Shown here one piece after another: positions 34,256 through 57,885 of a DNA stretch of 64,000 nucleotides. Numbering within the stretch: position 1 is the first letter of the stretch; each line of letters begins with the position of its first letter. The stretch lies in NCBI GenBank assembly GCA_043228905.1, contig JBHGNT010000005.1, forward strand, positions 18,352,001 through 18,416,000, written 5' to 3'. The translations under genes were made by a program, and so were the position numbers. The stretch comes from Azolla caroliniana (taxonomy: Eukaryota > Plantae > Polypodiophyta). The notes beneath the pieces were generated by a model. The model searched no databases, was not told where the DNA came from, and saw only the letters and a list, made by a program, of their open reading frames with translations.

Positions 34256-34286
34256 TTTCTGTGTTAACCTCGCTCTGATACCACTT

Positions 34287-34919
34287 TGTTGCAAACGGTG
34301 CTCGGCCACAACCGAGGAATAGGATCAACTCACAGAAAATAGGAAATACAAAGTACACGAAGACTTTAGAGAGAAGAGTACACAGGATATTTTACGTGGA
34401 AAACCCTAAATGGGAAAAACCACGGGAGTCCTCAAACTCCAACTATCACTATGAACAGGGATGTACAATGGTGAAGCTTCAAGGCAACAACCTTGAGCTC
34501 ACTGTCTTCGCCACAGGCGGCGGTAATACACAGAGGCAACGACCTCTTCGTCTCTCTCTCTCTCTCTCGCGGCTGCTCTCTTCACTCTCTCTAAGTGAAA
34601 ACAGAAAAAAATAAGCAACAACACTAAACTGTTTGCTCTAAGTCATATTTATACACATATGACTTTTCGGGCTATTTACAAATATAGCCTCAAGGGCCCT
34701 TGGCAAACATATTCACAAATATGTCCCCGCATCCGGATCTCTCTCCGGGTACATTCATCATCCGGCTCCGTAGCCAGGGTCTTCATCATCCGGCTCCGTA
34801 GCCGGGGTCTTCATCCGGCTTCATGCCGGGTACTCTTCATCCTCCGGTTCCGTAACAGCCTCCGGGCTTGCCGTCATTCATCTCCGGACATCCCATCCGG
34901 AGGGACCGAAATCCCAACA
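34287..34919 (-). repeat. Copia F 5' LTR
   Basis: Two 28-bp U3 units; 2 substitutions versus the 3' LTR by eye. Confidence 0.96.
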
Positions 34920-37040: not shown

Positions 37041-37987
37041 CACAACAAGTAATAATGTTGTTGTGGATCATGACGTCCTTTGTACCAAGTTTATTATGAC
37101 AAGACAATCCAACCACAACCAACAAGACATATGATTGAGTAGCCAAGAAGACATAAAATTGAGAACATTTGAGTCACTAGACCATAGCTAAGGATACGTC
37201 AGATTCAGTACTATATGACCAAGAAGATCGCTTCAAAATCCATGTATGTACTACAACAACCATCATCAAGAAGGAAATGCAACATATCTCATTGATAATG
37301 GTGGTACTAGATATGCACACGCACATATACAGGTGTGTGAAGAGTTCTAGTCGAAGCTCAATTGGGTTAGAAAGCCCTCAATTGGGTCAGAAAGCCATAG
37401 AAGCACACCAAGCACTCATAACACCCTACATCCCTAAACAGAGATAAATGCAGATAAGCAAAAGAAGAAAGTATTTACCAGGTGGAGGTGGAGGTTCAAG
37501 TATAGGTGTAAGTGTGGGCGTGGGTGCAGGTGGTTGAGTGCAGGTGTATCAGGTTTCAAAAACTTAAAAATAGGCGAAAAAATGTAAATGTTTAGGGTTT
37601 GAACAACATTATTGTTATGCCCGGGTTAGGTATACCATGATGCCTGGGTTAGGTAAGAAGGTCCGGGTTAGGTTTGCAGAGTCTCGGTTAGGTTTAGAAA
37701 ATTACGCTACCCGAGTTAGATTGGCATAGTTCGGGGGTTAGGTAATGTCATGGTAGGATGTGGCCGGGTTAGAAATTGAAATGTCTGGGTTGGAAAATGC
37801 CAGTGAGTGGATTAGAAGTGATGGAGGCTCATCAGAACCAAGTAGGGTGAGTTTCTAGGGAAGCAGTTTTTGCGGATAGAGATCGGAACGGTGCAAATCG
37901 CACGTGCCTTTCAAAATGCATGATTTCCTCACTTTGGCCTCTCTTTATTATTTATGTATTTGGTAGAAAATAGGAAAACATCTTGCA
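37041..37987 (-). mobile_element. MULE M1: left end only, head-to-head with M2, truncated by Copia E
   Basis: Inverted homology to the M2 left end (GATAGAGATCG.AACGGTG.A.ATCGCA, GATTTCCTCAC) and a cluster of CCGGGTTAGGT motifs at 37620-37795. Confidence 0.7.
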
Positions 37988-38027
37988 TGTTGTGTGTAAA
38001 ATGTATTGTTATGTGTAAAATGTGTGT

Positions 38028-38057
38028 TATGTATGTATGTATGTATGTATATGTATG
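38028..38057. repeat. (TATG)n microsatellite between M1 and M2
   Basis: Direct reading. Confidence 0.9.
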
Positions 38058-38192
38058 CGACGTTTCTATTTGCTACCAAATAATAATTAGGCTTGGTGAG
38101 GAAATCTCGGACATGGATGGTGCAGAACACGTTTTGAATGGCGCATGCGATCTACACCGTTCGATCTCTATCTATAAAAAGCGCGCGCTTAA

Positions 38193-38410
38193 AACCTAAC
38201 CCAGGTCTGACGAGCCCCTGTCACATCTAACCCGAGCAGTGACGATGCCATTTGATTACCTAACCCGGGGAATGTAATTATCTAAGCCTAACCCGGAGTC
38301 TTCACCTAACCCGGGCCTTATGATCCTATAATCCCAACCCGGAGTCCTTTCACCTAACCCGAGCCTTATAATCCAATTGTCCTAACCCAGTCCTTTGAAC
38401 CTAACCCAGG
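38193..38410 (+). repeat. Subterminal ACCTAACCCGGG motif cluster of M2 (~9 copies)
   Basis: Same motif recurs at 41560-41697 (+) and 44995-45063 (-). Confidence 0.88.
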
Positions 38411-38627
38411 CACAACTCCAACATGATTAAAACCCTACATAAATTCTTTTTCCTCAAATTTTCAAAATTTGTAACCTACACCTGCATCTACAAGTGCATT
38501 AGAACCAAAAGCTACCCCCCCCACCTACATCAGAATAGCTACTGGATACACGGTAAGGTACATTCTTTCCCTCTTTTCTCTCTTTACCTCTCTATCGTTA
38601 TTAGGCATCCAAGACTCTGTGCATATG

Positions 38628-39134
38628 ATCTTTCATCTTAGTTGAAAAATTAAAAAACATTGATCATCATATGTCTTTCCCACCATTAAGAACTATGCCC
38701 CATCTCTTATGCATTTGGTATGCTATTTATTTCTAAATCGTATATCTACTAGCAAATGTATGTGGCTGATTATATAACTAGTTATAAATTATTATTCTAA
38801 AAATTTAGAACATATGGTATATTTTGCTTTTGGATGGTCATTTTATAGAGTTGCTTGGCTATGGATGAGGAACAGATTATATTATCTTTCATCTTAGTTG
38901 AAAAATTGAAAAACATTGATTATCATATGTCTTTCCCACCATTAAGAACTATGCCCCATCTCTTATGCATTTGGTATGCTATTTATTTCTAAATCGTATA
39001 TCTACTAGCAAATATATGTGGCTGATTATATAACTAGTTATAAATTATTATTCTAAAAAATTAGAACAGATGGTATATTTTGCTTTTGGATGGTCATTTT
39101 ATAGAGTTGCTTGGCTATGGACGAGGAACAGATT
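38628..39134. repeat. ~251-bp tandem duplication inside M2
   Basis: 38628-38878 repeated at 38884-39134 with few differences. Confidence 0.92.
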
Positions 39135-39670
39135 TTTTTGTCATAGCCCTATGATGTTTTCAAATCCATTTTTTTTTGTCATGTGACATTTTCAAAGGCC
39201 TTAGATGGATGGATTGGCATCAAATTCTCATGTTGGTAATTGCCATCAAATTCTCTAAACACACAAAAGGCTCTATTCTATATGAGTTAACAAGTGCTTA
39301 ATACATGTGACACCTCATGGCTAATAATATCATAGCTCTCGGCTAATATTGTAGCTCCTCCATGTGCACTGATCCTTACACACCCATATATGTATTTTCA
39401 TTCGCATTTTTCTTAACCTCCTATGATATTCTGCTAACACTACTTTTAAAGAGTTATTCTCTTAATTCTATCCTCTTTAGGCTACGTAATTAAGGGCCCC
39501 AATTTTCATACAGTGTACAACAAATCAAGACCGTCAAGTAATATTTTGGTCAATACATCAAGGATCAAGGATGAGTTGGTTCATATCTAGCCAATTATTG
39601 TTGACTTATAATATGTACTTTGTCTCAAGAAGTGTTTCTAGAACTCATAAGAGGAAAACCCACGATCAAA

Positions 39671-41068
39671 TGTCGAGTATGCATAGTTGCAAAGTCGTGC
39701 TAGGAAAACCCACGATGGTTTCACAAGAAAATGGATCTGGAGGCACATTTATTGAAGGAACATGGCGTTAGGACCGTGCTTCCAAGAGGGTTGAAGATAG
39801 TGGAAGAGGAGGAAGCATTGGAAGGTAGTCCTAGATACTTCAGCAACTACGAACGAGAGAGATCAATCAATCACTTTTTTAATGTTGATCAAAAATATAA
39901 TAGAGCTTGTCTGTCCCACTTAAGAACAATAAAGCAAAAAGCACTCACGGAATACAATGCAATCCATAATGATCTCCGATCCTGCACAGAGGCTGAATTT
40001 GTACAAAACTTTACACGCCACGAGATCGAGAAATATGATTCTACAAAAGAGAAGCGGATAGAGAAGATTAAAGCTAAGATTGCAAAAGGTTACGATTTTT
40101 ATGTAAGTATTTTATTTTGGATTTAGGGTATTTTTAATAATACTCATCAAACTAATAATATGTTGCCAATTTGATACCTTATAGTGTAGGGCTCAAAAGG
40201 TGCAAATAGACAAAGAAGATTGGAACATCTCAACTAGCGGTGGGCATAAGACACAATTTAACTTGGAAGCATACCCGCTGCGTAGAGCCAAAATCCCAGT
40301 GAGACGGCCAAAGTTGGACCCGACCTTATGGGTACATATTCCATCTGAGTCAGAGGAGGATTATGAAGATGTCGGCTACGTTCAGATTGCATACGGGGAA
40401 GTCATAAGATCCTTATCCATGACAAATGGAAAGACATTCACCAAGTATTTTGGTTGTACAATCGATGATTTAGTGTCCTAACAATCAACATTCGAAGGGT
40501 ATTCTCATTTTGTAATATTATGATGCAAAACATATTCCAACTTTTTTGTAGAAGGCTGAATTTGTCTATTTACATCGGGGAACGCGAATTGCAATCAACG
40601 TGAACCCACGGAGAGATGGCATCGACATGGTCCATGAATGTCTTCCATATGTGGATGGAATACACCCAACCACAACACATATCCGACCTATATTGGATAG
40701 TTGATCCACTTTGGGTCCAACTATACAAGCAAACCAATAAGGCCAACGACATCCTTGGACAAGTGCCAGAATGTGATTTTGTATTCATACCCATAGTGCA
40801 TGAAGGGCATTGGGTCCTCTGGGTAAAGATGCGACATGCTCCAACCGATTTACATGCAGACAAGGTAACAAGTCCAGTTGTATTTATTGACCCAATGAAT
40901 AATCCAGCTAATAGGGAATTGAAGAGTTTGGCAAAAAGGGCTATAACCATAGTCACAAGCACCGTCGCAGACCATAAAATCATACCGTCGCATTGGTACG
41001 ACGATGATGACGTCTACCTTCTATGCGTTACAATTGCTAAGAGGGCACGACGTGTTTTGGGTTTCTGA
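39671..41068 (+). pseudogene. M2 C2H2-like zinc finger plus Ulp1/C48 peptidase gene, spliced, disrupted
   Basis: CIVAKSC*ENPRWFHKKMDLEAHLLKEH. Intron donor TAT|GTAAGT shared with M3. FIPIVHEGHWVLW and FIDP present; catalytic Gln/Cys segment deleted. Confidence 0.78.
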
Positions 41069-41973
41069 ACTTGTAACCTGATCCTGTTTTCTACCATCCT
41101 CTATATGGCTTGTACATGTTTATTATACCCCTCAGTATTGTAATTGGGTTTATTGTAATAGCCACACTTGTATCTCAGAGACGTAATATTTGTCCATTTG
41201 TTAAAGCCATATGGCATGTGTAAACAAACTTGTAGGTACTCTCGGTATTAAAGTAAATTGTCTTGCAATTTTGGACAATATGAATGCCTTGTAGGTATTG
41301 TAAATTTCGGCATGTAATTTTGCCCACAATATATTGTATTTTACATGTCAATACAAAGCCACACTTTTTGATAAATTCTTGTGCATATTGTAGTAACTTT
41401 TGTTTGTGCGTATAACGCTATAAACAATGAATCAGACGTGTTGATTCTTTCAATATTATGTCATAATTGGGCAAACGGATATCTGTCAATAATTTAGTAT
41501 ATATGGAACTTGAAAATTGATGTTAGATATATATGGTATATATGTTGTACATTATCACGTAACCCGGAAAGTAACCCGGAAAGTAATATTTGCACCTAAC
41601 CCGGGAAAGTAATGTATGTCTACCTAACCTAGGGAAAAAGTATTTGTCTGCACCTAACCCGGGATCAACTTACTGAATCCTTCCACCTAACCCGGGGCCA
41701 GATTCAATCTTGCTATGTTGATTCTGGTTCAACGTTTAGAAAACGGTCACCTCCATCAGAGGATTATATAATGCCGATACAGAAGTAATTAACTCTATTA
41801 GGGCTACCATAATCACATGATTTGAATCAGAAGATTATAATTGCTCTGATTAGGATCATATTATTGCCCTCATTATCATATTGCTCCACATTATCATACT
41901 ACTCACATTATCATATTGCTCTCAATTACACATTGTTATTGTTAACACTTTGCTCTCATTCCAAACTTGTGAT

Positions 41974-44847
41974 CATGGATGATTCATGTGGGTTAATGGA
42001 TGAAACACAATTTCTATTTGACTCAGAATTTGAATTGGAGGATTCGTTCTCAGATTCAGAAACTTCAATGAATCAATTGATGGTCAAGGGTCTGACGATG
42101 TCGACATCGAGGACGACTTGGATCCCTTCATGTTTTGTTCGCCAAGGTATTTTGTGTTTAATGAAGGTACGTATAAATTAATGGTTAATGATTTATTAGG
42201 AAACATAAAGGTTACGATAGAATCTTTAAAAGAGACCTCAAAGGGAGCACCTCTCACGATCTTAACCTGGAGGCGCATGAAGACTCAACTCATGCTAAAA
42301 AATGAGCATGAACTCTACTTGAAGTTGTCGCCACATCTAAGGGTATCATATGTAGAGCAATGGTGGTCTATCATATTGCACACACGCATTGGGGGGACAT
42401 CCCATTACCCACTCTCACAAACTCTTAAAGAGTTGAAGAAACATTGGCCATGGATCTTCGCAATCATGGAATAGCTAGTTCATACGTAAAAGCACTAATT
42501 GACCAATGTGAATGTCAGATAATACAAAAGGTGAATTCTATTGACATGTTAGGCACAAGTGTAAGTAAATATGATAAGACTACAATGCCCACTGAAGTGA
42601 TAGAGATAGAAGCTAGTAAGTTAGATGATACTTTGGCAGAGATTCAAATCAAGTATCATACATGCTTGCGGAGAGGAGTCCTAAAAGGCAAGCATGTGAC
42701 TAGATATGATTGTCATCGCGCAGGTGTGCCTCAACGAGTGGTCGGATGCTCTCGCTTGCGCAAGGGTTCAAAGCGTTCTGGGTGTAGTTTTCATTTGAAT
42801 GTAAGAGTGAATGAAGGGGATAAACATGGGATCGTGAGCATTTATGTATACAGATGCCATTCAAGTCATGTCCCAGGAACGAGACCTGACGTGTACCACT
42901 TGCGGGTCCATCCTAATGTAATAGAATGTTGTAAAGATGATCTTTTTTATGTTCGTTGTGCGAGGCATGTTGCACGGATGAGCATGCGAAAAGAAGCATA
43001 TCACAAGTCCAAGGCTACTCCATTAGAACTTGTCACTTTTAGATTCTTTATGATACCAAAGGAGGTACATAACATGGCCAATACATTAAAAATAGGTAGT
43101 GCATTGTCGCAAGTTGATTGGTCATTGATGATGCAAGATGCCTATGCACTTCGAGATCTAGGCAAAGTGGCACATGTGCAACCCTACTTGCCTGGTCCAA
43201 ATGGGTCTCCAGCTCGACAACCATTTATCTTGATACTTCAAGATAAATGGATGTTGGAAATGTGTGAGCGATTGTCACAAAACAACTCTTGGGCAATCGA
43301 CTCCACATTTAAAACTAATCAATTTAGGCTCCCATTATATGCAGCGATTGCACCAAATGCCATGGGAATAGGGATCCCACTATGGTATATGATTTGTAGT
43401 TCTGATAAGGGCTCAAATCATGAGCAAGTGGCATTAGAAACTTGCTTGAAAGTCATATTTGCTAGGATGCCTAGGACAAGGCCAAATGCAATAGTCATTG
43501 ATAAATCTTGGACATCATATAATGCCATATCTAATGTAATTGCTCAAGACCGTGAATCTTGGATTGTCACAAATGGTGAATGCTCACAAACACGTTGTCG
43601 TCTTTTATTGTGTCAGTTCCATGCAAAAAAGTCATGGGTTGACAACTTATTGCCCAAAGTGAGTGCCGCCGAAAGAAACCCCCTCTATCAAAGGATGTGC
43701 CAACTCATGCATTGCATTAGCGAATCATCCTTCAATGTTATGTGTGAGGAGGTAAGGCAAGAATACTCAAACAAACCCGGGGTTTGGCAACATATTGAAG
43801 GTGGATGGTGTGGACAAACATGTTGACACTACCAATCTTGTGGAGAGACATTGGCAATTTCTCAAGTACACTGCTTTGAGAGGAAGAATAAACCGTTCTA
43901 TTACTGATCTTGTGCATGTTTTAATTGGGGACAGTGTCTCTGGCACTTGCATCGGTGGGACCGTGGTAGAATGGTGCATGCAACGACAAGAGATATGTGA
44001 GAGTGGTAGATTCCAACCCCGTGCAAATTGTAATGATCAAAGGTCAAGACTTAAAGAGGCCGAGAGGATACTAGAAAGATATGTGACCAATAACAACTTG
44101 GTATTTATTGTGGACGAGGCCCGATATTGGTTTCGAATATTGAGCATGACCACTCCCACTGTATGGTACAATGTCTCACTCCAATGTTCATATTGTGATT
44201 GTCAAGACTTTGCAAGTAAATGTAAGCATTTTCTTGCGATTCGGATGATCGTTGAGAGACATATGCCATCACTATGTGGATCATTACCATTTATAGATCA
44301 TGCAACCCAAATGTGAATGGATGATGCCACAATGGATAGAGAACTAAAGTCGACACAAGAAGCAAAAGTTGAGATGAATTTAGAAATTGACGAAAGGGAA
44401 GAAATAAAGTTAGAAGCACATCAACCTATGGAAGCACTTCAACTTCTCGAGCAAGGATGGGGAGCAATGAATAGTGCGGCTCTTGAGCGTTGTCGGCAAC
44501 TCATGGTAGATTTTCGAAAGGAGTTGCTCTTATCTATGGGTGCATCAACAACAACCAATATGGCATCGGGAGGTTCAATAAGTCAAAAGCAACAAATTGG
44601 TGTGAAAAGAGGAGCCATGCCCAACATTTCACAAGAACTTATTGGCAGCTCCCCAGACATGACCAAAACGCACACTGGCAGACTACAAAGAGGTGCTCGT
44701 CATGCTAAGAGGCGGTTGCCAATATGTGACACTGAGAAGGTTCAGTGTTTGCATTGTGATGGTTTGACATTGACTTCAAGAGACTCCAATGCAAATTGGT
44801 GCAAAAATTGTGGGTGTATCTTGCCATGCTTTGAACAAGAGCCTTGA
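41974..44847 (+). pseudogene. M2 MULE DDE transposase with SWIM finger and C-terminal Zn ribbon
   Basis: WAIDSTFKTNQFRLPLY, IVIDKS, LLCQFH (CxxH), TTNLVERHW, CDCQDFASKCKH (SWIM), CLHC..CKNC. Frameshifts near 42076, 42445 and 43820; stop at 44314. Confidence 0.9.
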
Positions 44848-45097
44848 TCTCATAGTTTTTATTACATTACATCATGTGATTATTATATTATATGTAAAAT
44901 CGTGCAATTTTGTATTATAAAAATTAGGCTTGATATTTTTGAGTAATCTTAGCATCTTTTTTTAACTATGATCTCTTCAGAAATTTTAATCGGGTACCTG
45001 GGTTAGGTGCATGCACCCGGGTTAGGTTTGTGTACCCGGGTTAGGTTAGACCTGGGTTAGGTGTCCGCGATTACCTCACCAAATAATAATTAGGCTT

Positions 45098-45179
45098 GTA
45101 TGTATGTATGTAGGGTATGTATGTATGTATGTATGTATGTATGTATGTATGTATGTATGTATGTACGTACGTACGTACG
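45098..45179. repeat. (TATG)n/(TACG)n microsatellite between M2 and M3
   Basis: Direct reading. Confidence 0.95.
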
Positions 45180-45328
45180 AACGACGTGTCTATTATGACA
45201 CAAATCATAAAGAGGGCTGGTGAGGGAATCACGACCACAAATGGTGCAGGTTGCTCAGAGAAGGCGCGTGCAATCTGCATCGTCGAATTTCGATAATGAA
45301 GAAGGCGCGAAAAATAAAGTTGTGCAGA

Positions 45329-45664
45329 GGTCGCCCAACCGTTGGGTGACCAGTTTAAGCAGGTTGCCCAACTGCTTTAGGGCTTATATTGAGTTGGTCA
45401 CCCAACCAACTCAATAAAAGATGTAGGTCGCCCAACCGTTTATTTTTAAAGCGGTTGGGTGACCAGTTTAAGTAGGTTGCCCAACTGCTTTAGGGTTTAT
45501 ATTGAGTTGGTCATCCAACCAACCCAATAAAAGATGTAGGTCGCCCAACCGTTTATTTTTAAAGCGGTTGGGTGACCAGTTGAAGCAGGTTGCCCAACTT
45601 CTTTAGGGTTTATATTGAGTTGGTCACCCAACCAACCCAATAAAAGATGTAGGTCGCCCAACCG
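45329..45664. repeat. 113-bp tandem repeat x ~3 rich in GGTYRCCCAA motifs, upstream of a TATA-like box
   Basis: GGTCGCCCAACC at 45329, 45426, 45539 and 45652. CTATAAAAG at ~45669. Confidence 0.92.
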
Positions 45665-48304
45665 ATGACTATAAAAGCCTAAAACCTGTCATTATCTCTC
45701 ATTTTTTCAAACAAGATTGACAGGTTTCTTTTGTCGGGAAAGAGTTGGGCGTCAGGCGGCCTGCAATCAACATACACAACAATCAATCTCCTCCATCACT
45801 ATTCCCAGGTATGTACTAAACCCTATCACATCACTTTTTCTGTTTTTTTTACATGTGGTAGAAATAGTTGAGGGATTAGGGTTTGGAGTAGTTGAGGGAT
45901 TTTGTTTCTTGTTGAGGGATTACAAGGATAAGGATTCATTACTAAAATCATGTAGAAGGCTCTACCTCAGACATGAAATCTATGCATTGAATAAGGTAGC
46001 AGTATTCGATATTGCATCCTGAGTCTTTTAACTGCATAGTTAAGATACAAAACATGGATATGCCATCACTATTATCCCCCCAAAACAAATGGAAAAAATA
46101 GTAATAATAATCACGAAGCTACATTTGAATTGTCTCAATCCTTGGTTTGATTGATTCAAAAAGGGGTATTTCAATCTTCCCCCTAAGATCATCCACATCA
46201 ATTACCACATTTTTTTAATCTTCTTCGAGAATGTGTAACACTTTTCGCTGAGCGGCATGCAAACAACCTCTACATAACGGAAGGAAAACTTTCTTATGTT
46301 CTATCAATTACACATTCACTCATCATCATAATCATGGTTCCATACCATCATCAATAGCCTTACCCCCTCTTCATAAACCTTCTTACTTCTTTAATCATGT
46401 ACTCTCTCTAGTTTACCAACACTAGAGACTCTGGCTTTGATTCAATTAACTCTCTTTTATTGTCAATCCCCAGAGACAACTCTGTGCCATGTTTAAACTG
46501 TCTCAATCCTTGGTTGATTCAGAATGGCATTGATTTAACCCTGAAGTCATTCATATCATTATCATCACATTTTTTTAGTCATCAACAATGTGTAACAATC
46601 TCATCGTCATCTTTTCTTTTCTTCATTTTTTTAGTCATCAATAATGTGTAACAATGGCACTAAAGCATTGCCATTTTCCATTTTCCCTCTTTTTTTTATG
46701 AGAAGTTAAGTAAGCCAGATTTCCAAACACACTTTCATTAATTGCCATTTTTCCATCGTAATAATCCTTTCTTCTTAGACGTTACATCAACCAATTTTTC
46801 ATTGCCATTGTTCCATCCTCATCTTTTTTTCTTAGAGGTCACATCAACCACATTCACTGCAACACATCTTCATCTTCATTTCTTCTTCTTAATCAACCAA
46901 TATTTACTGAAGATGTCTCATTTTACATTCATTTTCTCTTTCTTAGATCATCCACGTTTTACCAAAAGCATTCTCATTCTAATCTTCTGACTTTTCCTCT
47001 TAGGACAAACCACATTTACTAAATCATTTAACCTTCATCTGTTGTTTTGCACACAATCCTTACATACAGGGATGGTCACCACCATCATCATTATATTCCT
47101 CCTCTTCTGAACTGCTTATTCGTCATCATGTAAGCTGAGCATTTTCTCCAATCATCACTTACATGTATACTACCCTCATAAATTGTGTGCATCTTAAACT
47201 CAACCATGAAGAGCTCCATGAGCCCTAGAACCCAGAAATGAAATTTCAAGACCTAGAGCATTTTTGAAACAGAGAAGCAAAACCTTCCATGGAATGATGA
47301 CATATTCCTATAAACAGAAAGAACAAAAAGAGAGAAAAACAAGAGAAAAGCCAAGGAAACCAACATACCCTGATACAGGCACCAAAAATTTCTAGAGTTG
47401 TGAAGATTGAGGATGGATACTGAGAGGAGGATGAACCCACAAAGAAATCTAATAGAGCCAAAATTAAAAAATTAAAAAAAATCTAAAGAGTTGTTTCCTT
47501 ATCCATATCCAACCACTCAGAGATATTGTTCTTTTGGGACAGAGGTTCTCATATTCCCCTCATGATTCCTTCCATTTTACTAGGGGTACCCTTTAGAATT
47601 CAGATAAACATGCCCAAAAACTTCTCTCTTTGCTAAGATTCTCACTACACAACAATGTGACATCAATATCTCTAGTGATATTCATAGGGATAGTGTTTCT
47701 ATCATAGATCAAACTAATCATGGGCAAATGAATAATGTTATCTGTTGCAAGGTATTAGTCATCCCAATATCTGTTGGTATGGAATGTTGGTGGTAGGTTG
47801 GCTATGTCTTGATTATAGCTTGGGGGTGGACTTCTATACGATGAGGTTGGGCTACCAACATTACAAAAGCCATCTACCTTCTAGTTTTGGGTGAGATTTA
47901 TTCTATTTCCCTTTTTCTAATATTCCTTTTGAGCTTCCTATGCATTCTAGTGTCAATGTCTTTGTGTTTCTTTTCCTAAATGGTAGGTACTTAACAATCT
48001 TTGGCATTCTAAGAACTCACATCTCCCTTAAGTCCCCAAAACTTCATGTCTCTTGATTAAATATGAGGTTGAAACAATCAATTTAAACAATCAATTCTTA
48101 CAACTTAGACATTGGGATTTGAGTCTCATTCCTGCTTAATCTAATTATTGCAACATGATAAGTAGGATATAACATATGGGGAGATTTGGAAGTGAGGGAT
48201 TAGGGTTTCGGGTTTAGGGTTTAATGATTTGCTTGCTTAAACTTAATATTGTGTGTGTTTGAGTATTAAATTCAAAAAATGTTTGATTACTTGAATGGTG
48301 GTAG

Positions 48305-50019
48305 ATGGCTTCCAAGTCCAAGTACAAAGATTGGTGGGATTTCGATAACAGTGACATATATCCAACTCAAGAGAGGTATGTCACGAACCAATCTCCCCTA
48401 ATACTAGTTTAGGGTTTGATGCATGTATGTTGACTCGTGATTTGTTAAAGGGTCTTCGTTAGAAGACATTGGCGAAGTTCGTCAGTCGACATGTGTACGA
48501 GTGGGGACAGAATGGATCAAACACATACGCCTCAGATCGAGCCCATACAGGCCATGGCAACATTTGACCAAGATGCTCCTCCAAATGGTATGTGGATTTG
48601 GTGTCGTTCCAATATGCCAATCTTTATGTCAATCTTAAATATGTAACATATACAGAAGGAACAGATGCTCCTCACCCAGACTCGTTGTATAAGGTTGGAA
48701 GAGATGCAAATAGGAACAAGGCCCGTGCGTGTATCTATATTGAGTATTGCCGTCTCTCGCCAAGGTGGTATCGCAAAAAAAGTGACATGGAATCACATTT
48801 ACGCAGGGAACATGGAATAGACATAGTCCTACCACGAGGGATGCGTATAGAGGAGGAGGAGGGTATTCCAGGGGTATGCTTTAATAACTATGAGCATCAG
48901 AGATCACTTAGAAGATTCGTGGACCCCGAAATCAAGTACAACAAAAATCGGCAAACATATATCCAGAAGTTGAAGGTTAGGGTTGTTTCGAGGTACCACT
49001 CTATTCCGTCTGAACTCCGTCTTGACACAGAGGCAGAGTTCGTGGCGCAATTTATGGACAATGAGATGGCCACATACGACTCCAAAAAGGATGAGCGTTT
49101 GGAAATGTTGACGAAGAAGATATCATCCGGTTTGGATTCTTATGTAAGTATGAGCAAGGTTTTCATTTCATATATGTGTTGGAGGGTTTATTGGTAGAAT
49201 TCAGATAATAACATGTGTCTTATTGTGGTGAAACAGTGTAAAAAGGCGGGGATATTTCTATGCATTCAGGTACCAGCTGACCTGCCAACGTCTCGATTTG
49301 GCCCTTGACGTTACCGAGTCATATCTTGAGACCATGTGCAAGTGTCGTGAAATGGCATCGACGTGGACTATGACCTTATTCACGTTGTGGATGGAGTATT
49401 CGTTGCCACTCGAGGTGACAGAACGCTTCACCGTCGTCGACCCACTGTGGGTGACGCTACACCAACAGACGATGAAGGGGCAAGCCATCCTTAGGAAGGT
49501 GGCTGAATGTGATTATATGTTCATTCCGATTGTGCTTGACGGGCATTGGGTGTTGTGGACAAAGATGCAACAGAAAGTTTCTAAGCTAACTAGCAAAGTA
49601 GTCTTCTGCGATCCATTGAACAACGCAGCGACTGACAACGTGTGGAGAATGGCAGAGTTGGCGATTCGGGAAATTTCATCTGAACCGTTAGACCACACCA
49701 TTGTGCCCGAGGGTCAACATCACGTATTGCACATCCCAACTCAGCCAAATTGTTGGGATTGTGGCTTTTACGTCATGAAGACTATCCAAATGTTGGTGGG
49801 GGAGTTCTTACAAGGATGGATATCTCCGACTTTTGTAAGTGTAATTGCAATGCCTTATTCATGTGGATTGTGTATAGATGTGTTCTTATACATATTTGGT
49901 GACAGGGCACAGAGATGTGGTTCACCAAACACGAAGTGGATTCACTTCGGAATCATATGGATGAGTGGGCACGAAGGATACTAGGATTTGCACCTGCGAC
50001 CGGTGGCTCCATATTGTAA
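48305..50019 (+). pseudogene. M3 spliced C2H2-like zinc finger plus Ulp1-like SUMO protease gene, probably missing a middle exon
   Basis: Phase-consistent exons 48305-48375, 48451-48587, 48656-49143, then ~49270-49834 and 49906-50019. CIYIEYC..WYRKKSDMESHLRREH; complete GHW / FCDP / QPNCWDCG catalytic motifs. Phase mismatch across 49143-49270. Confidence 0.8.
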
Positions 50020-50248
50020 ATTTTGTGAATGTTGTTTTCAGCACACATTTTGCTATAGAGCTTATGTTATAACTATATTTTGGAATCCACACAAATTTTG
50101 TATAGCGAGAATCGACTCATTGTATATCGCGATTACTTATTAATGGAAATGTTGTTTACAACAAGTGTTTATCTCAAGTTGATTTGTTGTTTTAAACCAA
50201 TCACAAGTTGTGATCTAAAGGTGATTTGTTGTTTTCAACCAATCTAAG

Positions 50249-50842
50249 TGTTGGGATTATGGTCCCTCCGGATGGGATGGTCGGATGTCCGGGAATCGGG
50301 AATGAAGACCCGGTTCCGGAGCCGGATGATGAAGACCCCGGCTACGGAGCCGGATGACGAATGTACCCGGAGAGAGATCCGGATGCGGGGACATATTTGT
50401 GAATATGTTTGCCAAGGGCCCTTGAGGCTATATTTTTGTAAATAGCCTGGAAGTCATATGTGTATAAATATGACTTAGGGCAAACAGTCTTTGTGTTGTT
50501 GCTTATTTTTCTGTTTTCCACTTAGAGGGAGCGAAGTGAGAGCAGCCGAGAGAAAGGGAGAGAGAGAGGAAGGAAGAGGTCGACGCCTCTGTGTAATACC
50601 GCCGCCTGTGGCGAGGACAGCGAGCTCAAGGTCGTCGCCTTGCAGCTCGCCATTGTACTTTCCCTGCGTATAGTGATAGTTGGAGTCTTGCACTCCCGTG
50701 GTTTTTCCCGTCTAGGGTTTTCCACGCTAAACCCTGTGCATTCGAGTCTCTCTCTGTGTTTTCGATTTACTGCTGCATTGATCCGTGTTTCCTCGGTTGT
50801 GGCCGAGCGGTGAAGGTTTTCGAAACCGTTGATTTCCTAACA
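50249..50842 (+). repeat. Copia G 5' LTR
   Basis: TG..CA; 28 bp shorter than the 3' LTR, 2 substitutions by eye. Confidence 0.96.
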
Positions 50843-50873
50843 ATCTGGTATCAGAGCGACGGCAGTGCAGAAA

Positions 50874-53800
50874 ATGGAAGGCGGCAGCAGCGGGCAGCCG
50901 GGGATGATGGTGCTGAATGCGCAGAACTACGCCGACTGGAAGATAAAGATGGAGGATCTGCTCATTGTTCGGGACCTGTATGAACCAATCGACAGGTCGG
51001 AAATACCCAAGGGGGTACTTGAGACGGAATGGAGGCTTCTGAACCGGAAAGCCGTTGCAACCATTCGGCAATACGTCGACGTGAGCGTTCTACAACATGT
51101 GGCGAACGACACCAACGCATATGAGATGTGGCGGAAGCTGTCGGGCCTCTACGAGAGGAAGAATGCGTTGAACCGGACCTCCCTGATGAGGAAGATAGTG
51201 AACCTCAAGTACCGGGACGGCGAGAGTATGGTGGAACACATAAGCACGTTCATGGGATTCGTGAACCAGCTTGCGGCGATCAAATTCCCGTTGGAGGATG
51301 CAATGCAAGCCATCATCCTGATGTGTACATTGCCGGAAAGCTGGGAGAACTTGGTGGTGACTCTCAGCACCTCCTGCACCGAAGATAACTTGTCCCTACA
51401 AACGGTAAAGACAAGTATTTTGAACGAAGAAGCGCGTCGGAGAGATAAAGAACCGGCCTCCGATCCGAAGATGCTGCTTACCGAATCGGATCGGGGAAGA
51501 CAACGGAACCGGAGTCCGCAAAGACGGCAGAAGTCAGGGACCCGTTCGCAGTCAAGAGGAAGGCCCACATGCTTCCACTGTGGGAAGCCGGGGCACTTCC
51601 GGAAGAATTGTCGGCATTACCGAAAAGACAACGGAGCCGACGACACCGATTCGAAGAAGTCTTCAGAACGGAACGGTGTTTACCGGGGAGCTACGGACCG
51701 GAATGGTTCGGATCGGCGAGGGCAGGACCGGAAAGGAACGACGGCACTCGCGGCAAGTGAAGAGGAGATCATGCTCATCACCGAAGAAGGTGAACTAAAC
51801 ATTGCCGGCGATGAGACCACCTGGGTGGTCGATTCCGGAGCGTCGTTCCACCTGACCCCGGAAAGAAGATACTTCTCATCCTACACAGCCGGTGAGCATG
51901 GCTGTGTTCGGATGGGAAATGAAGGTACGTGCCGGATTGCCGGCATAGGAGACGTGTGGTTGACAACCTCGACCGGATGCAAAATGTTGCTGAAGGATGT
52001 CCGACACGTTCTGGAGGTTCGATTGAACCTGATTTCGGCCGGGAGGCTAGACGATGAAGGCTACACAGGTAGCATCCGGAACGGCGTAATGAAGTTCAGC
52101 AAGGGGAGCCTGATAGTGGCTCGGGCCCGGAAAGTCAACATACTGTACCTTATGAATGCCTGGTTGTGTCCGGAAGAGTTGAACGTGGCAGCCGACACTG
52201 CCGGTGAGCTGTGGCACAAGAGACTGTGCCACATGAGTGAGAAGGGGATGAAGAGGCTTGCAGAAGAAAACCTCATTCCAGTGAAGCATGTGCACCTGGA
52301 GAAGTGCACTGATTGCCTGGCCGGTAACCAGAACCGAACCTCCTTCCACTCAAGGCCACCGACGAGACGTAGCGCACCATTGGAGTTGGTGCACACTGAT
52401 GTGTGTCAGGTAGAAACGAAGTCACATGGCGGAGCCCAGTACCTCGTAACATTCATAGATGACCATAGCCGGAAGCTGTGGACGGCACCGTTGAAGACAA
52501 AGGACCAAGTATTGTCCGTCTTCAAAGAACTCCACGCGAGAGTGGAAAGAGAATCCGGCAAGAAGCTGAAAGCACTACGAGCAGATAACGGAGGAGAATA
52601 CCGAGGGCAATTTGAGGAGTATTGCCGTTCGATGGGAATCCAGCTCGAGTTTACTGTGCCGAAGACGCCGGAACTGAATGGGCTGGCCGAGAGGATGAAC
52701 CGGACTATAATGGAGAGGGTCCGGAGTATGCTGGCGCATGCGAAATTACCCAAGGGGTTTTGGGCTGAGGCAATGTCGACGGCGACATACGTGATAAATA
52801 GATCACCCTCAGTACCTTTGGACGGAGACACGCCACAGAGAGTGTGGACCGGTAAGGAAGTATCCTACCGCCATCTGAAGGTGTTCGGGTGTCTCGCATA
52901 TGTGCATGTGGCAAAGGACCGGAGAGGAAAGCTAGATCCAAAGACCCGGCCATGCATATTCCTCGGTTACGGCGATGACGTGTTCGGCTACCGAGTATGG
53001 GACCCGGTCGACAAAAAGATATTCCGGAGTCGTGATATCATCTTCATGGAGGACAAGACACTCGCCGACTGGGAGTCGGAGAAGAAGATGAAGAGCTCCA
53101 AGTCGACCGGTGAGGATCAACTCTACGAGGAGCAGTCCCGACCGGCAAGGGACCGGTTAGCACTCGAGGATCCGGCCGAAGACGGTGAAGAAACAGAACC
53201 GGCCGAGGAAGATGAAACTGATACCGGAACCGGCCCCGATCCCGAAATGGATTCGGATGAAGAGGAAACGGAGGAGCCGGTTACCGAAGCTCCGGAACGG
53301 AGATATCCTCTAAGAGAGAGAAGGGCCCCCCGGAGATGTCCGGAACCAGAGCACGTGCTGCTAACCGACGAGGGGGAGCCGGAGAGTTTTGAAGAAGCAA
53401 AGCTTGACACCCATAGCCACAGGTGGTTAAGTGCCATGCAGGAGGAGATGGATTCCCTGCATGAGAACCACACATATGAACTTGTGGAGTTGCCGAAAGG
53501 AAAGCGGGCACTTCGAAACAAGTGGGTGTTCAAGCTGAAACCGGGAGATGCCGGAAACCCCCCGAGATACAAAGCCAGGATCGTGGTGAAGGGGTTCCAG
53601 CAGAAGAAGGGCGTCGACTTCAACGAGATATTTGCCCCGGTAGTGAAGATGACCTCCATCCGGACGGTGCTGAGCATAGCGGCAAGCATGGACCTCGAGG
53701 TAGAACAGATGGACGTGAAGACGGCATTCCTTCACGGTGACCTCGAAGAAGAGATCTACATGCAGCAACCGGAAGGATTCGAGAAGAAAGGGAAGGAGCA

Positions 53801-54947
53801 CCTGGTATGCCGGTTGAAGAAGAGCCTTTACGGACTGAAGCAGGCTCCCCGGCAATGGTACCGGAAGTTCGACTCTTTCATGACCGACGAAGGGTACCAC
53901 AAAACGCAGTCCGATCACTGCGTGTTTGTGAAGAAGTTCGAAGGAGGAGACTTTCTAATACTCCTCCTGTACGTGGACGACATGTTGATCGTCGGACGGG
54001 ACCAGGTCAAGATACGGATGCTGAAGAAGGCGCTTCACCGAACCTTCTCAATGAAGGACCTGGGTCCGGCAAGGCAAATACTAGGGATGCACATCATCCG
54101 GGACCGGAAGAAGAAGCAGTTGTGGCTGTCACAGGAGAAGTACGTGACAAAGGTGCTTCACCGGTTCAACATGTCGGAAGCAAGACCGGTCGGTTCAACC
54201 CTCCCGGCAAACTGCAAGTTGTCCAGCAAGCAAAGCCCCAAGACAAAGGCTGAGAAGGAGGACATGATGAAAGTACCATATGCCTCTGCCGTCGGAAGCT
54301 TGATGTACGCAATGGTGTGTACAAGACCGGACATAGGATATGCAGTCGGAGTGGTGAGCCGGTACATGAGCAATCCCGGCAAAGAGCACTGGAACGCGGC
54401 CAAGTGGATACTCCGATACCTGAAGGGCACAGCAAACGTGTGCCTCCGATTCGGCTCCGGTAAGCCCGAACTCGACGGCTTTACCGATTCGGATATGTCG
54501 GTTGATGCAGATACCAGCCGGTCCACATCAGGGTATGTGATGACGTATGCAGGGGGAGCTGTTTCGTGGCAGTCGAGGCTGCAGAAGACGGTTGCGTTGT
54601 CAACCACGGAGGCGGAGTACATGGCGGCTGTTGAAGCCGGCAAGGAAATAATATGGATGAAGGACTTCATTAGAGAGCTCGGTATCCGGCAGGAGGAGTA
54701 CCGACTCTACTGCGACAGTCAGAGTGCCATCCACCTTGCGAAGAACGCGGCCTATCACTCCCGGACGAAGCACATCCAGCGAAGATATCACTGGATCCGG
54801 GAAAGGATAGAAGACCAGGAGTTCGTGTTGACGAAGATCCACACGGACGAGAACGGGTCAGATATGCTGACCAAAGTGCTCACACCCGACAAGCTGGAAG
54901 CGTGCCGGAAGAGGGTCGGACTGGAAAGACATCCCATGCCGAAGTGA
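50874..54947 (+). CDS. Copia G gag-pol polyprotein, intact ORF
   Basis: All GAG, PR, INT, RT (YVDD) and RNase H motifs present. ATG at 50874. Confidence 0.96.
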   Translation: MEGGSSGQPGMMVLNAQNYADWKIKMEDLLIVRDLYEPIDRSEIPKGVLETEWRLLNRKAVATIRQYVDVSVLQHVANDTNAYEMWRKLSGLYERKNALNRTSLMRKIVNLKYRDGESMVEHISTFMGFVNQLAAIKFPLEDAMQAIILMCTLPESWENLVVTLSTSCTEDNLSLQTVKTSILNEEARRRDKEPASDPKMLLTESDRGRQRNRSPQRRQKSGTRSQSRGRPTCFHCGKPGHFRKNCRHYRKDNGADDTDSKKSSERNGVYRGATDRNGSDRRGQDRKGTTALAASEEEIMLITEEGELNIAGDETTWVVDSGASFHLTPERRYFSSYTAGEHGCVRMGNEGTCRIAGIGDVWLTTSTGCKMLLKDVRHVLEVRLNLISAGRLDDEGYTGSIRNGVMKFSKGSLIVARARKVNILYLMNAWLCPEELNVAADTAGELWHKRLCHMSEKGMKRLAEENLIPVKHVHLEKCTDCLAGNQNRTSFHSRPPTRRSAPLELVHTDVCQVETKSHGGAQYLVTFIDDHSRKLWTAPLKTKDQVLSVFKELHARVERESGKKLKALRADNGGEYRGQFEEYCRSMGIQLEFTVPKTPELNGLAERMNRTIMERVRSMLAHAKLPKGFWAEAMSTATYVINRSPSVPLDGDTPQRVWTGKEVSYRHLKVFGCLAYVHVAKDRRGKLDPKTRPCIFLGYGDDVFGYRVWDPVDKKIFRSRDIIFMEDKTLADWESEKKMKSSKSTGEDQLYEEQSRPARDRLALEDPAEDGEETEPAEEDETDTGTGPDPEMDSDEEETEEPVTEAPERRYPLRERRAPRRCPEPEHVLLTDEGEPESFEEAKLDTHSHRWLSAMQEEMDSLHENHTYELVELPKGKRALRNKWVFKLKPGDAGNPPRYKARIVVKGFQQKKGVDFNEIFAPVVKMTSIRTVLSIAASMDLEVEQMDVKTAFLHGDLEEEIYMQQPEGFEKKGKEHLVCRLKKSLYGLKQAPRQWYRKFDSFMTDEGYHKTQSDHCVFVKKFEGGDFLILLLYVDDMLIVGRDQVKIRMLKKALHRTFSMKDLGPARQILGMHIIRDRKKKQLWLSQEKYVTKVLHRFNMSEARPVGSTLPANCKLSSKQSPKTKAEKEDMMKVPYASAVGSLMYAMVCTRPDIGYAVGVVSRYMSNPGKEHWNAAKWILRYLKGTANVCLRFGSGKPELDGFTDSDMSVDADTSRSTSGYVMTYAGGAVSWQSRLQKTVALSTTEAEYMAAVEAGKEIIWMKDFIRELGIRQEEYRLYCDSQSAIHLAKNAAYHSRTKHIQRRYHWIRERIEDQEFVLTKIHTDENGSDMLTKVLTPDKLEACRKRVGLERHPMPK

Positions 54948-54957
54948 AGGGGGAGTT

Positions 54958-55579
54958 TGTTGGGATTACGGTCCCTCCGGATGGGATGGTCGGATGTCCG
55001 GGAATCGTGAATGAAGACCCGGTTCCGGAGCCGGATGATGAAGACCCCGGTTACGGAGCCGGATGATGAAGACCCCGGCTACGGAGCCGGATGACGAATG
55101 TACCCGGAGAGAGATCCGGATGCGGGGACATATTTGTGAATATGTTTGCCAAGGGCCCTTGAGGCTATATTTTTGTAAATAGCCTGGAAGTCATATGTGT
55201 ATAAATATGACTTAGGGCAAACAGTCTTTGTGTTGTTGCTTATTTTTCTGTTTTCCACTTAGAGGGAGCGAAGTGAGAGCAGCCGAGAGAAAGGGAGAGA
55301 GAGAGGAAGGAAGAGGTCGACGCCTCTGTGTAATACCGCCGCCTGTGGCGAGGACAGCGAGCTCAAGGTCGTCGCCTTGCAGCTCGCCATTGTACTTTCC
55401 CTGCGTATAGTGATAGTTGGAGTCTTGCACTCCCGTGGTTTTTCCCGTCTAGGGTTTTCCACGCTAAACCCTGTGCATTCGAGTCTCTCTCTGTGTTTTC
55501 GATTTACTGCTGCATTGATCCGTGTTTCCTCGGTTGTGGCCGAGCGGTGAAGGTTTTCGAAACCGTTGATTTCCTAACA
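54958..55579 (+). repeat. Copia G 3' LTR
   Basis: Extra 28-bp unit at ~55031-55058. Confidence 0.96.
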
Positions 55580-55839
55580 CTAAGTTGTGATCTAAAGTTG
55601 ATTTGCTGTTTTAAAAGTTTCTCAAGTTGTGATCTCCAATAGATTTGACGTTTTAACCAATCATCTACTTAATCCTTTCTCTATCTTATTAGTAAATTCT
55701 AATTTCACACAGCTCCTAGTTCCTAAAAGACTTTCAATTGACTTTAGCAACGTTCCTAGAACCTTCCTCGCATATGTCTAAAAAAAGGACTTTTTTTATT
55801 TCTTTAATGAACTACGATTTTTCATTCAACGGAGAAACC

Positions 55840-56240
55840 AAGTTGCCCAAACATCTTTAAATTAATTCTCTTTTGATATGGTCACCCAACCAGGTTACCC
55901 AAACCTCTTAAAATTAATTCTCTTTTGATATGGTCACCCAACCAGGTTGCCCAAACCTCTTAAAATTAATTCTCTTTTGATATGGTCACCCAACCAGGTT
56001 GCCCAAACCTCTTAAAATTAATTCTCTTTTGATATGGTCACCCAACCAGGTTGCCCAAACCTCTTAAAATTAATTCTCTTTTGATATGGTCACCCAACCA
56101 GGTTGCCCAAACCTCTTACAATTAATTCTCTTTTAATATGGTAACCCAACTAGGTTGCCCAAACCTCTTAAAATTTATTCTATGTTGATATGATCACCCA
56201 ACCAGGTTGCCCAAACCTCATAATCCAGGTCGCCCAACCT
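55840..56240. repeat. 52-bp tandem repeat x ~7 between the M3 Ulp1 gene and transposase
   Basis: AAATTAATTCTCTTTTGATATGGTCACCCAACCAGGTTGCCCAAACCTCTTA, two GGTYRCCCAA motifs per unit. Confidence 0.95.
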
Positions 56241-56448
56241 GTTACCTAAACGGCCAAAAAAACGGTCATATTAACATGTAAATTAATCACATTTTAAGTC
56301 ATATTAAACCCTTCACTGTCATTTTAATCAAAGTTGATTCCATCTCCAGTTAATTACCTTTTAAGATCAGATTCAATTAATCACATTCTCTATCTTAATC
56401 CGAAGCAATTAATCACATTCTCTGTCTTAATCAAGTTCTTATAATCAA

Positions 56449-57562
56449 GTCATCGATAAAAGTTGGACATCATATGATGCCATAAGTAATGTGGTTGCAA
56501 CAAACCGATTATCTTGGATAGTTACAAATGGGCAAAGGTCGCAAACACATTGTCGACTTTTGTTGTGTCACTTCCACGCAAAAAAAGCATGGTTGGACAA
56601 TTTGTTGCCAAAGGTAAGTGCAACTGAGAGAAACCATCTTTATAATCGGATGTGCCAACTCATGCAATGCATTACGGAATCCACATTCAATGCCCAATGT
56701 GATGAGTTAAAGGTAGAATATGCAAACAAGCTAGGTGTTTGGCAATATATAGAAGGAGGATGGTGTGGCTTGACATGTGTGTGGAGGAAACTGTGGCCCA
56801 AATTTGGTAGAATGTTCAACTACGGACATGTTGACACTACCAATCTCGTGGAGAGACATTGGCAGTTTATCAAATATACTGCCTTAAGAGGGAGGATAAA
56901 CCGATCAATTACTGATCTTGTGCATGTTTTAATCGGGGACAGTCAAACTGGCACTTGCATCGGGGGTACTGTTATTGAATGGTACAAGCAACGACAAGAA
57001 ATATGTGAGAGTGGTAGATTTGCACCACGTGCAAATTGTAGGGATCAAACAACAAGACTTAAAGAGGCCGAAAGGCTACTAGAGAGGTATGAAACTAATG
57101 ATGTGACAATGCATATTGTGGACGAGCCCCGATATTGGTTTAAAATATTGAGCTTGACAAAACCGAATGTATGGTATAATGTATCGCTCCAATGTTCATA
57201 TTGTGATTGCCAAGACCCTACGAGTAAATGTAAGCATATACTCGGCATCAGGATGATTATTGAGAGGCACATGCCACATCTATGTGGGTCCCTCGACCGT
57301 GCAACAATTTTGGCATGTATGGAGTCCATTGAAGAAATAGGTCAGACGCTGGTGTATCACCTAGGTGCATCGAAACCAACCAAAGAAGAAGACCGTGGAT
57401 CCATAGGGCGTAAGCAAGCAATTGGTGCAAAAAGGGGAGCATCAATCAACATTTCACAAGATCTTATTGGCAGCTCCCCAAACACTTGCAAGGCACACAC
57501 AGGAAAAATGCAAAGAGGCGCAAGTCGAGCTAGGAGGCGGTTGCCAATATGTGCAACAGAGG
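56449..57562 (+). pseudogene. M3 MULE transposase, 5'- and 3'-truncated
   Basis: Begins at VIDKSWTSY. LLCHFH, TTNLVERHWQF and SWIM CDCQDPTSKCKH present; clearly homologous to M2. Confidence 0.88.
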
Positions 57563-57746
57563 CGGTTGGGCGACCTCTGCACAACTTTATTTTTCGCGCC
57601 TTCTTCATTATCGAAATTCGACGATGCAGATTGCACGCGCCTTCTCTGAGCAACCTGCATCGTCTGTGGCCGTGATTCCCTCACCAGCCCTCTTTATGAT
57701 TTGTGTCATAATAGACACGTCGTTCGTACATACATACATACATACA
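57563..57746 (-). repeat. Inverted copy of the M3 left end including flanking microsatellite
   Basis: Reverse complement of ~45158-45341 with few differences. Confidence 0.92.
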
Positions 57747-57800
57747 ACCGCGATTCCCTCACCAGCCCTCTTTATGATTTGATGCAGAATAGACACGAGC

Positions 57801-57885
57801 ATGTATGTATGTATGTATGTATGTATAGACACGAGCATGTATGTATGTATGTATGTATGTATGTATGTATGTATGTATGTATGTA
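57801..57885. repeat. (TATG)n microsatellite at the M3 right end
   Basis: Contains a slipped second copy of the terminal ATAGACACGAGC. Confidence 0.95.

Follow-up and report, generated by a model that had tools for sequence, protein, structure and literature searches.

Azolla Mutator-like elements carrying a zinc-finger/SUMO-protease gene and family-private motif arrays

Two sister elements with one layout

A stretch of 64,000 nucleotides from the fern Azolla caroliniana (hereafter the window) was analyzed, corresponding to positions 18,352,001 to 18,416,000 of the forward strand of contig JBHGNT010000005.1 (GenBank assembly GCA_043228905.1). All window coordinates are counted from its first nucleotide. 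The region of interest, 37620-57900, contains the right end of one Mutator-like element (MULE), M1, followed by two further elements, M2 (~38034-45100) and M3 (45158-57746), which are spaced by (TATG)n microsatellites. M2 and M3 represent two sister families of a Mutator-like transposon of the fern lineage with terminal inverted repeats (TIRs), and both copies are decayed. As a first-pass annotation of the window had described, both follow one plan, in which an element end is followed by a motif array, a spliced gene encoding a zinc finger and a Ulp1/C48 SUMO-protease domain (hereafter the helper gene), a second motif array, and the transposase gene.

The two TIR arms of M3 (left, 45158-45341, plus strand; right, 57563-57746, minus strand) aligned as an inverted repeat of 184 nt with 96% complementarity, and the left arm showed one GGTCGCCCAA at its inner end. 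The left terminus of M2 (38034-38190, plus strand) consists of a (TATG)n tip and a TIR. It was recognized by an inverted repeat with the right end of M3, such that 38034-38125 and 57655-57746 were 73% complementary, and by its match to L003, a public contig of the M2 family, whose right end (6689-6862) paired with 38234-38061 of M2. The right end of M2 itself is shortened in the window. Long TIRs of the MULE type were thus observed in both families, namely in the two arms of M3 and in the M2 left end taken together with the right end of L003.

One gene encodes the finger and the protease

Both helper-gene copies in the window are pseudogenes, and any activity would therefore have to come from other copies. 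In M3, the gene spans 48305-50019 on the plus strand, with its exons projected from an intact relative, L001. Exons 1 and 2 (48305-48375 and 48451-48587) are followed by exon 3 (48656-49143), in which the annotated C-x5-C-x15-H-x4-H finger was located at 48735-48818. Only a remnant of exon 4 is present (49237-49251), because 254 nt of this exon and the next intron are deleted, and this deletion breaks the reading frame at 49251/49252. The C48 exon (49270-49834) retains its catalytic residues, and the last exon lies at 49906-50019. Peptidase_C48 was detected by Pfam in the M3 open reading frame (ORF) at 49298-49984. As side observations on this copy, ~1 kb of its long first intron (47108-48140) is absent from L001, and the depth of contigs from run X1 has a sharp peak at 47538-47877, as would be expected for a high-copy repeat inserted there.

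The M2 copy has lost more. Its homology to the intact relative L003 begins at 39664, so that the first two coding exons are missing, and the finger exon remnant (39664-40102, plus strand) ends in TAT|GTAAGT. The finger that had been assigned to M2 is present as an exon, but the codon after its second Cys is TAG (39701-39703). Exon 4 and a truncated C48 exon follow at 40185-41068 (plus strand), where the catalytic His and Asp are present, whereas ~200 bp containing the catalytic Gln and Cys together with an intron are deleted at 40984-40990. The M2 ORF alone gave no Pfam match to Peptidase_C48. The intron position said to be common to both copies was found as such, with TAT|GTAAGT followed by AG|TGT at 40102/40185 in M2 and at 49143/49237 in M3.

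Intact relatives were obtained from public contigs, of which L001 and L002 belong to the M3 family (L002 to a subfamily) and L003 belongs to the M2 family. L001 was 96-98% identical to M3 over the helper-gene region and contained a 1641-nt coding sequence (CDS) for 546 aa with a single terminal stop. L002 kept every splice site and contained a 1593-nt CDS for 530 aa. L003 was 94% identical to the window M2 and contained a 1638-nt CDS for 545 aa with the same 71-nt first exon. All three genes consist of six exons with GT-AG introns throughout, identical intron phases (2,1,0,2,0), and no internal stops. The reconstruction of intact genes, which had been proposed as a check in the first-pass annotation, thus yielded clean six-exon frames, and its claim that the finger and Ulp1 belong to one spliced gene was supported by a single ORF in three relatives from two families. 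A separate search for RNA evidence gave three sequencing runs that share a small part of the sequence words, none of which is on record as RNA; their contigs are DNA-like pieces of related copies with no joint at the predicted introns and are neutral on splicing. Domain, database, and fold searches were run exon by exon, and the joined CDSs were used for length, stops, and substitution rates.

We then compared the helper CDSs of L001 and L002. The synonymous rate (dS) was 0.156 and the non-synonymous rate (dN) was 0.063, giving a dN/dS of 0.40 (48 differences at 344 synonymous sites and 75 at 1243 non-synonymous sites). Regionally, dN/dS was 0.24 in the finger exon, 0.07 in the 36 codons around the finger, and 0.45 in the C48 part, indicating that the helper ORF is, as judged from these ratios, under purifying selection. 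The C48 exon aligned with yeast Ulp1 (1EUV), including the HW, D, and QPNxxDCG elements, and scored 38.6-42.1 bits against PF02902 in the window M3, L001, and L003, compared with a cutoff of 20.7. His92, Asp114, Gln158, and Cys164 were invariant in nine C48 exons of both families, the window M3 included. The helper C48 domain is accordingly a predicted SUMO protease with a complete His-Asp-Gln-Cys set. A word search with the C48 exon returned unnamed ENA fragments only. Because of the intact six-exon frames, the identical phases, the invariant catalytic residues, and the purifying selection, we conclude that the finger and the protease are parts of one protein.

The same order was observed more widely. 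A finger exon followed by C48 segments on one strand was also found in L004, where the helper gene is convergent with the transposase gene, and in the distant L007, whose finger exon is 25% identical. Read-through of the GTAAGT donor after the finger exon, which adds the residues VS, was present in many distant fragment ORFs, so that the intron position must be old. In L005, a more distant transposase locus, no finger or C48 similarity was found. Separately, P0024, a fragment from another family, contains one ORF in which the finger exon passes directly into the catalytic C-terminal portion of C48. It is a deletion derivative that again places the finger and C48 in one gene. In L003, positions 1-400 pass from an unrelated flank through (TATG)n into the first helper exon, and no left TIR or array was seen, whereas the window M2 has both but lacks exons 1 and 2. 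This leaves two explanations, rearrangement of both copies or a chimeric join of the contig at the microsatellite.

The finger module and the linker

The helper protein (~545 aa) is ordered as a variable N-terminus, the finger with a helical module, a linker, and the C48/Ulp1 domain. In the M2 family, a further Cys is located three residues upstream of the C-x5-C-x15-H-x4-H pattern. No Pfam model matched the finger module at threshold, and the best scores were to the fungal C2H2 models Rua1_C and Zap1_zf1 (E 0.07-0.16). Similarly, a VANC-type domain (DUF1985/DUF287) gave no Pfam match at E<=1 in any helper exon. An exhaustive HMMER search of 1.84 billion representative proteins yielded 56 matches to the module, all of which were short genomic ORF fragments, and the only named one was a hypothetical protein of the fern Adiantum capillus-veneris.

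The structure of the finger exon was predicted by AlphaFold2 (AF2) from an alignment of 29 sequences, with a predicted local distance difference test (pLDDT) value of 84. The model showed a beta-hairpin, a helix carrying both His residues, an acidic, disordered loop, and long helices that span ~80 residues. The Cys2His2 ligands were present in most of the 29 aligned sequences, many of which are decayed copies, and the predicted secondary structure fitted a beta-beta-alpha arrangement. Foldseek against the PDB, a wide VIA search, and the Atlas returned only generic helical matches or tiny zinc-ribbon ribosomal proteins, none of them at E<=0.001, while an Atlas feature search gave weak C2H2-type leads only. 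Prediction of a homodimer of the finger exon scored 0.00, which is evidence neither way.

In exon 4 of both families, a basic stretch precedes a Ser/acidic cluster and V-x-(I/Y)-V-Q-I (L001 2813-3079; L003 1348-1607; window 40185-40452). Based on general knowledge of SUMO-interaction motifs (SIMs), we take this linker to resemble a nuclear localization signal and a SIM.

Motif arrays are private to each family

The CCTAACCCGGG motif, counted with <=1 mismatch, showed 16 matches compared with 0.82 expected, a number that was reached in 0 of 100 shuffles. All of these were in M1 and M2, at 37620-37672 (minus strand), 38195-38410, 41595-41696, and 44997-45061 (minus strand). GGTYRCCCAA showed 26 exact matches in the window compared with 0.64 expected, and these were confined to M3, at 45329-45661 and 55880-56237, with one in the right TIR (57566). 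The use of different motifs at equivalent array positions, CCTAACCCGGG in M1/M2 and GGTYRCCCAA in M3, was thereby corroborated.

In M2, array A (38195-38410, plus strand) contains six matched CCTAACCCGGG copies (<=1 mismatch) together with degenerate ones. Array B (41559-41696, plus strand) lies ~70 bp upstream of TATATAAT (41765) and ~280 bp upstream of the transposase ATG (41975), and array C (44994-45062, minus strand) is located at the right end, inverted relative to array A. In M3, array 1 (45329-45679, plus strand) is a tandem repeat of a 113-bp unit (x2.9) with four motif copies per unit, after which TATAAAAG follows at 45670. Array 2 (55836-56237, plus strand) is built of a 52-bp unit (x7.5), each with two motif copies 13 bp apart. 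The repeat analysis thus agreed with the 113-bp and 52-bp amplifications reported for M3. The right end of M3 has no array and shows the single motif in the TIR. As observed, the 10-11-bp motifs lie just inside the element ends and upstream of each gene start, with TATA-like boxes ~10-70 bp after the array ends (TATAAAAG at 45670 in M3; TATATAAT at 41765 after array B of M2).

Privacy of the motifs was then checked across seven related loci from public assemblies. The M3 motif was found only in the two M3-family loci (19 copies in L001 and 7 copies in L002), and the M2 motif only in the M2-family locus L003 (10 copies). L004, which represents a third family, had its own word, CAAGTAAACC, in 9 copies, with arrays at both ends that are not inverted relative to each other. 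Family-specific short motifs arranged in tandem in non-coding regions, a feature of the VANDAL type, were thus present in the fern elements.

Several further observations concern these arrays. The YR of GGTYRCCCAA is CG, TG, or CA, which are CpG and its two deamination products, and each is position-fixed in every repeat unit. One motif pair forms a near-palindrome at 45329-45351, and the 52-bp unit repeatedly shows pairs with a spacing of 13 bp. The YR variation and the pairing suggest that the motif was once methylated and that its reader may be a dimer. Furthermore, the telobox AAACCCTAA occurred 14 times in the window compared with 0.5 expected, at 45490, 45603, 45876, 48200, 48214, 48409, and 8 other places. 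The 5' part of M3 accounts for six of these sites, two of which fall in separate 113-bp units and three around the start exon. In L001 and L004, too, the word is common ahead of the helper gene. The M2 motif includes GGGTTAGG, a telomere-repeat-like word. Additional unrelated short tandem repeats, which differ between the families, were observed after the helper gene or before the transposase start (50158-50235 and 55577-55654; 41862-41921; 56290-56440; L002 3936-4290; L004 3650-3880).

The transposase and the rates of divergence

The M2 transposase gene (41975-44847, plus strand) is split into four or more ORFs, of which 42444-43826 matched the MULE domain (PF10551) with 39.1 bits compared with a cutoff of 27.6. 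An intact protein of the same family was found in L003 as a single 798-aa ORF (P0082), which scored 34.7 bits. By sequence reading, P0082, which is a MURA-type transposase, has a WRKY/FAR1-like C..C..H.H segment before the MULE domain and a SWIM-like C-x-C...C-x-H near its end. Its nearest annotated relatives were hypothetical proteins of Adiantum nelumboides and A. capillus-veneris (42-50%), followed by lancelet proteins at 34%. The transposase assigned to M3 is present (56448-57570, plus strand, 78% identical to the M2-family protein), but only as its C-terminal third, with ~500 N-terminal residues deleted. The M3 family does have this N-terminus, as seen in L002; among the matches retrieved, none was a complete M3-family transposase that includes the DNA-binding region.

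Comparison of the M2 and M3 families showed uneven divergence. Identity was 78% for the transposase C-terminus and 73-77% over ~95 nt for the TIRs. It was 53% for the transposase N-terminus, 51-52% for the C48 exon, 44-46% for the finger exon, and 41% for the whole helper protein, and the arrays shared nothing. A slow pair, the catalytic transposase and the TIR, therefore stands beside a fast helper, a fast transposase N-terminus, and fast arrays.

Relation to known systems

Ulp1 domains have been described in Mutator elements of Arabidopsis (KAONASHI), melon (CUMULE), rice, maize, grapevine, hydra, and lancelet (PMC13317346; PMC2836005), so that the first-pass statement that Ulp1-bearing MULEs exist agrees with the literature (PMC2836005). 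Like these, the fern elements combine a MULE transposase and C48/Ulp1 in one element, with lancelet relatives of the transposase at 34%. In contrast, the fern Ulp1 gene is separate and carries a finger module confined to fern-like sequences (56 matches among 1.84 billion), and it is described here together with family-private arrays.

The VANC proteins of VANDAL elements bind short family-specific motifs that evolved by tandem-repeat formation in non-coding regions, and they demethylate cognate copies (PMC5735166), in line with the account of VANC in the first-pass annotation. According to a 2026 review (PMC13317346, citing Sasaki et al. 2022), some VANC genes with an Ulp1 domain recognize family motifs and cause family-specific hypomethylation. 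VANC is structurally MAIN-like and has been described as dicot-specific (PMC13547354). The fern elements resemble the VANDAL/VANC systems (including KAONASHI/KIU) in that a Mutator element encodes a transposase and a fast-evolving accessory protein, in that Ulp1/C48 is joined to another module, and in that family-private short motifs are tandem-amplified upstream of the element genes. They differ in several respects. The N-terminal module of the fern helper is a C2H2-like finger and not a VANC domain; the TIRs are long, whereas VANDALs are called non-TIR elements (PMC13317346). The host is a fern, and the nearest relatives of the transposase come from ferns and lancelets, not from angiosperms. 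No paper on fern elements of this kind was found in the literature searched. The combination of a targeting domain, Ulp1, and family-specific tandem motifs has thus already been reported for eudicot VANDAL/VANC, and the fern case would add a different putative reader. The idea of the first-pass annotation, that the finger tethers a deSUMOylase to the element's own arrays, therefore applies the known VANDAL scheme to a fern element in which another domain would act as the reader.

Two further comparisons were made. In Spm, TnpA binds subterminal motifs that overlap the promoter and counteracts methylation. If the scheme proposed below holds, the fern helper would likewise be an accessory non-transposase protein that acts on repeated subterminal, promoter-overlapping motifs and counteracts methylation. 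Unlike the helper, TnpA of En/Spm (CACTA) belongs to another superfamily and has no protease domain, and the two show no homology. With the classical C2H2 finger (PF00096), the module shares the Cys2-His2 order, a predicted beta-hairpin followed by a helix with both His residues, and a faint resemblance to C2H2 models from fungi and to Atlas clusters that include C2H2 families. It differs in its spacing (C-x5-C-x15-H-x4-H, not C-x2-4-C-x12-H-x3-5-H), in its occurrence as a single copy, and in matching no Pfam model at threshold.

Candidate readers of the arrays

The structural premises of the tethering idea, namely one constrained finger-Ulp1 protein and private arrays, were both found. Further points in its favor are the third motif of the third family, the faster divergence of the helper (41% identity) than of the transposase (53-78%) while the TIRs still align, the array ends shortly before TATA-like boxes, the predicted beta-beta-alpha fold of the finger, and the VANC precedent. 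We propose that the arrays may mark 'self' copies for an element-encoded DNA-binding protein, and we favor the finger-Ulp1 helper as this reader, which would act like VANC of VANDAL or TnpA of En/Spm. Through the helper, a SUMO protease would be delivered to the promoters and ends of cognate copies, where SUMO would be removed from chromatin or silencing factors or from the transposition machinery. Such removal would keep the family transcribed and mobile, and the motif and its reader would turn over together between families. The window copies would be at most targets of proteins supplied in trans. This sequence of finger binding to the arrays, tethered deSUMOylation, and reversal of silencing is plausible, and we hold it tentatively.

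Several points weigh against the helper as reader. One C2H2-like finger usually reads 3-4 bp, compared with a motif of 10-11 bp here, so the single finger is a weak candidate. DNA binding by the module is itself an assumption, because it belongs to no Pfam family and has no structural relative. Co-variation of motif and reader is not demonstrated either, since only three families are available and every protein part diverges. The main competitor is the transposase. The arrays may be subterminal transposase sites, as in Ac or as in end synapsis of the TnpA type. The Ulp1 helper would then act without DNA targeting, for instance on repair factors, on the transposase in SUMOylated form, or on chromatin proteins that it contacts by way of its SIM-like motif. 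We rate this explanation as only slightly less likely than the helper scheme, and as reader of the arrays the transposase is an equally good candidate. The transposase carries its own candidate reader, a WRKY/FAR1-like segment of the CxxC..HxH type, next to the MULE and SWIM domains, and its N-terminal region is far more diverged (53%) than its C-terminal part (78%). The arrays adjoin both ends, and in M2/L003 the right-end array is inverted with no gene there to regulate, so that it looks like the subterminal repeats of transposase-binding or synapsis type. According to a 2026 preprint, TnpA and a Mu transposase can act on cognate copies as sequence-specific activators in their own right, and a role for Ulp1 in transposition or repair was proposed earlier (PMC2836005). 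Nevertheless, the TIRs, which are the usual place of MURA binding, are still alignable between the families, whereas the arrays have been wholly replaced. The M3 right end lacks an array except for one TIR motif, and the end arrays of L004 are not inverted.

Alternatively, no element-encoded reader need be involved. Were the arrays ordinary promoter or enhancer repeats read by host factors, their fast turnover would follow from the instability of tandem repeats. The enrichment of AAACCCTAA inside the 113-bp units and around the M3 start exon, the GGGTTAGG word within the M2 motif, and the other unrelated short tandem repeats in the same intergenic regions are in line with this explanation. We nonetheless consider it quite unlikely, given that one 10-11-bp word occurs at two or three places per element, is shared by every copy of its family, and is absent from the other families, and that it persists between subfamilies at a dS of 0.16. 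It is very unlikely, in our estimate, that the helper is a passenger, captured from the host as a ULP gene and of no use to the element; its finger would then be a protein-interaction module, and the window copies would simply be decaying. Gene capture is common in MULEs according to a review, both window copies are pseudogenes, and no DNA-binding family was recognized for the finger. Against this, four or more divergent lineages, with identities as low as 25%, maintain the architecture. Transposon copies show purifying selection together with invariant catalytic residues, and Ulp1 is a recurrent component of Mutator elements in hydra, lancelet, and several plants.

The question addressed by these elements is the role of the recurrent Ulp1 in plant and animal Mutator transposons. 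A fern Ulp1 with an unrelated putative DNA reader and private tandem motifs would be an independent natural replicate of the Arabidopsis VANC case. If the finger reads the arrays, tethered deSUMOylation would be the common denominator, which the three motif/protein pairs make directly testable. Reading by the transposase would instead require another mode of action for the helper, and either answer narrows the question. The intact copies L001, L002, and L003 supply the reading frames for such tests. In its strongest form, the proposal would be that ferns independently built the device of eudicot VANDALs, in which a new C2H2-like reader fused to Ulp1 co-evolves with private arrays at promoters and ends. 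We regard this as unlikely. If it were true, the convergence on 'reader plus Ulp1' would make local deSUMOylation the effector step of Mutator silencing escape across land plants.

Other features of the region

M1 is represented by its right end (37620-37975, minus strand), which was identified from motif matches, sequence reading, and inverted similarity. It consists of a CCTAACCCGGG-type array (37620-37790) and a TIR related to the M2 left end, such that 37809-37916 and 38233-38132 showed 71% inverted similarity. M1 as a complete small element was ruled out, since the right end alone is present. All element ends enter the (TATG)n microsatellite, where a target site duplication (TSD) of the 8-11 bp type is not readable. 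The (TATG)n/(CATA)n stretches reached by the ends lie at 37988-38058, 45097-45177, 57727-57745, and 57801-57885 in the window, and at 240-290 in L003. Because the M3 TIR alignment extends into the microsatellite, (TATG)n looks like part of the element tips and not of the target alone, a point relevant to the idea that (TATG)n links MULEs into chains. Just outside M3, at 57748-57797, the TIR tip occurs once more as a 50-bp copy.

A Copia long terminal repeat (LTR) retrotransposon, which is outside the helper/array system, is located within M3 at 50249-55579 (plus strand, TSD CTAAG), between the helper gene and the second array. L001 has the empty site, which marks the Copia element as an insertion into M3. 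The element is 5331 bp long and young, and its intact 1360-aa ORF (50865-54947) encodes a complete Copia polyprotein as judged by Pfam. A 300-nt stretch of the LTRs was 100% identical, and the full LTRs aligned at 95% because of an indel. A second Copia copy, ~92% identical and in the opposite orientation, was found upstream at 29551-34814.

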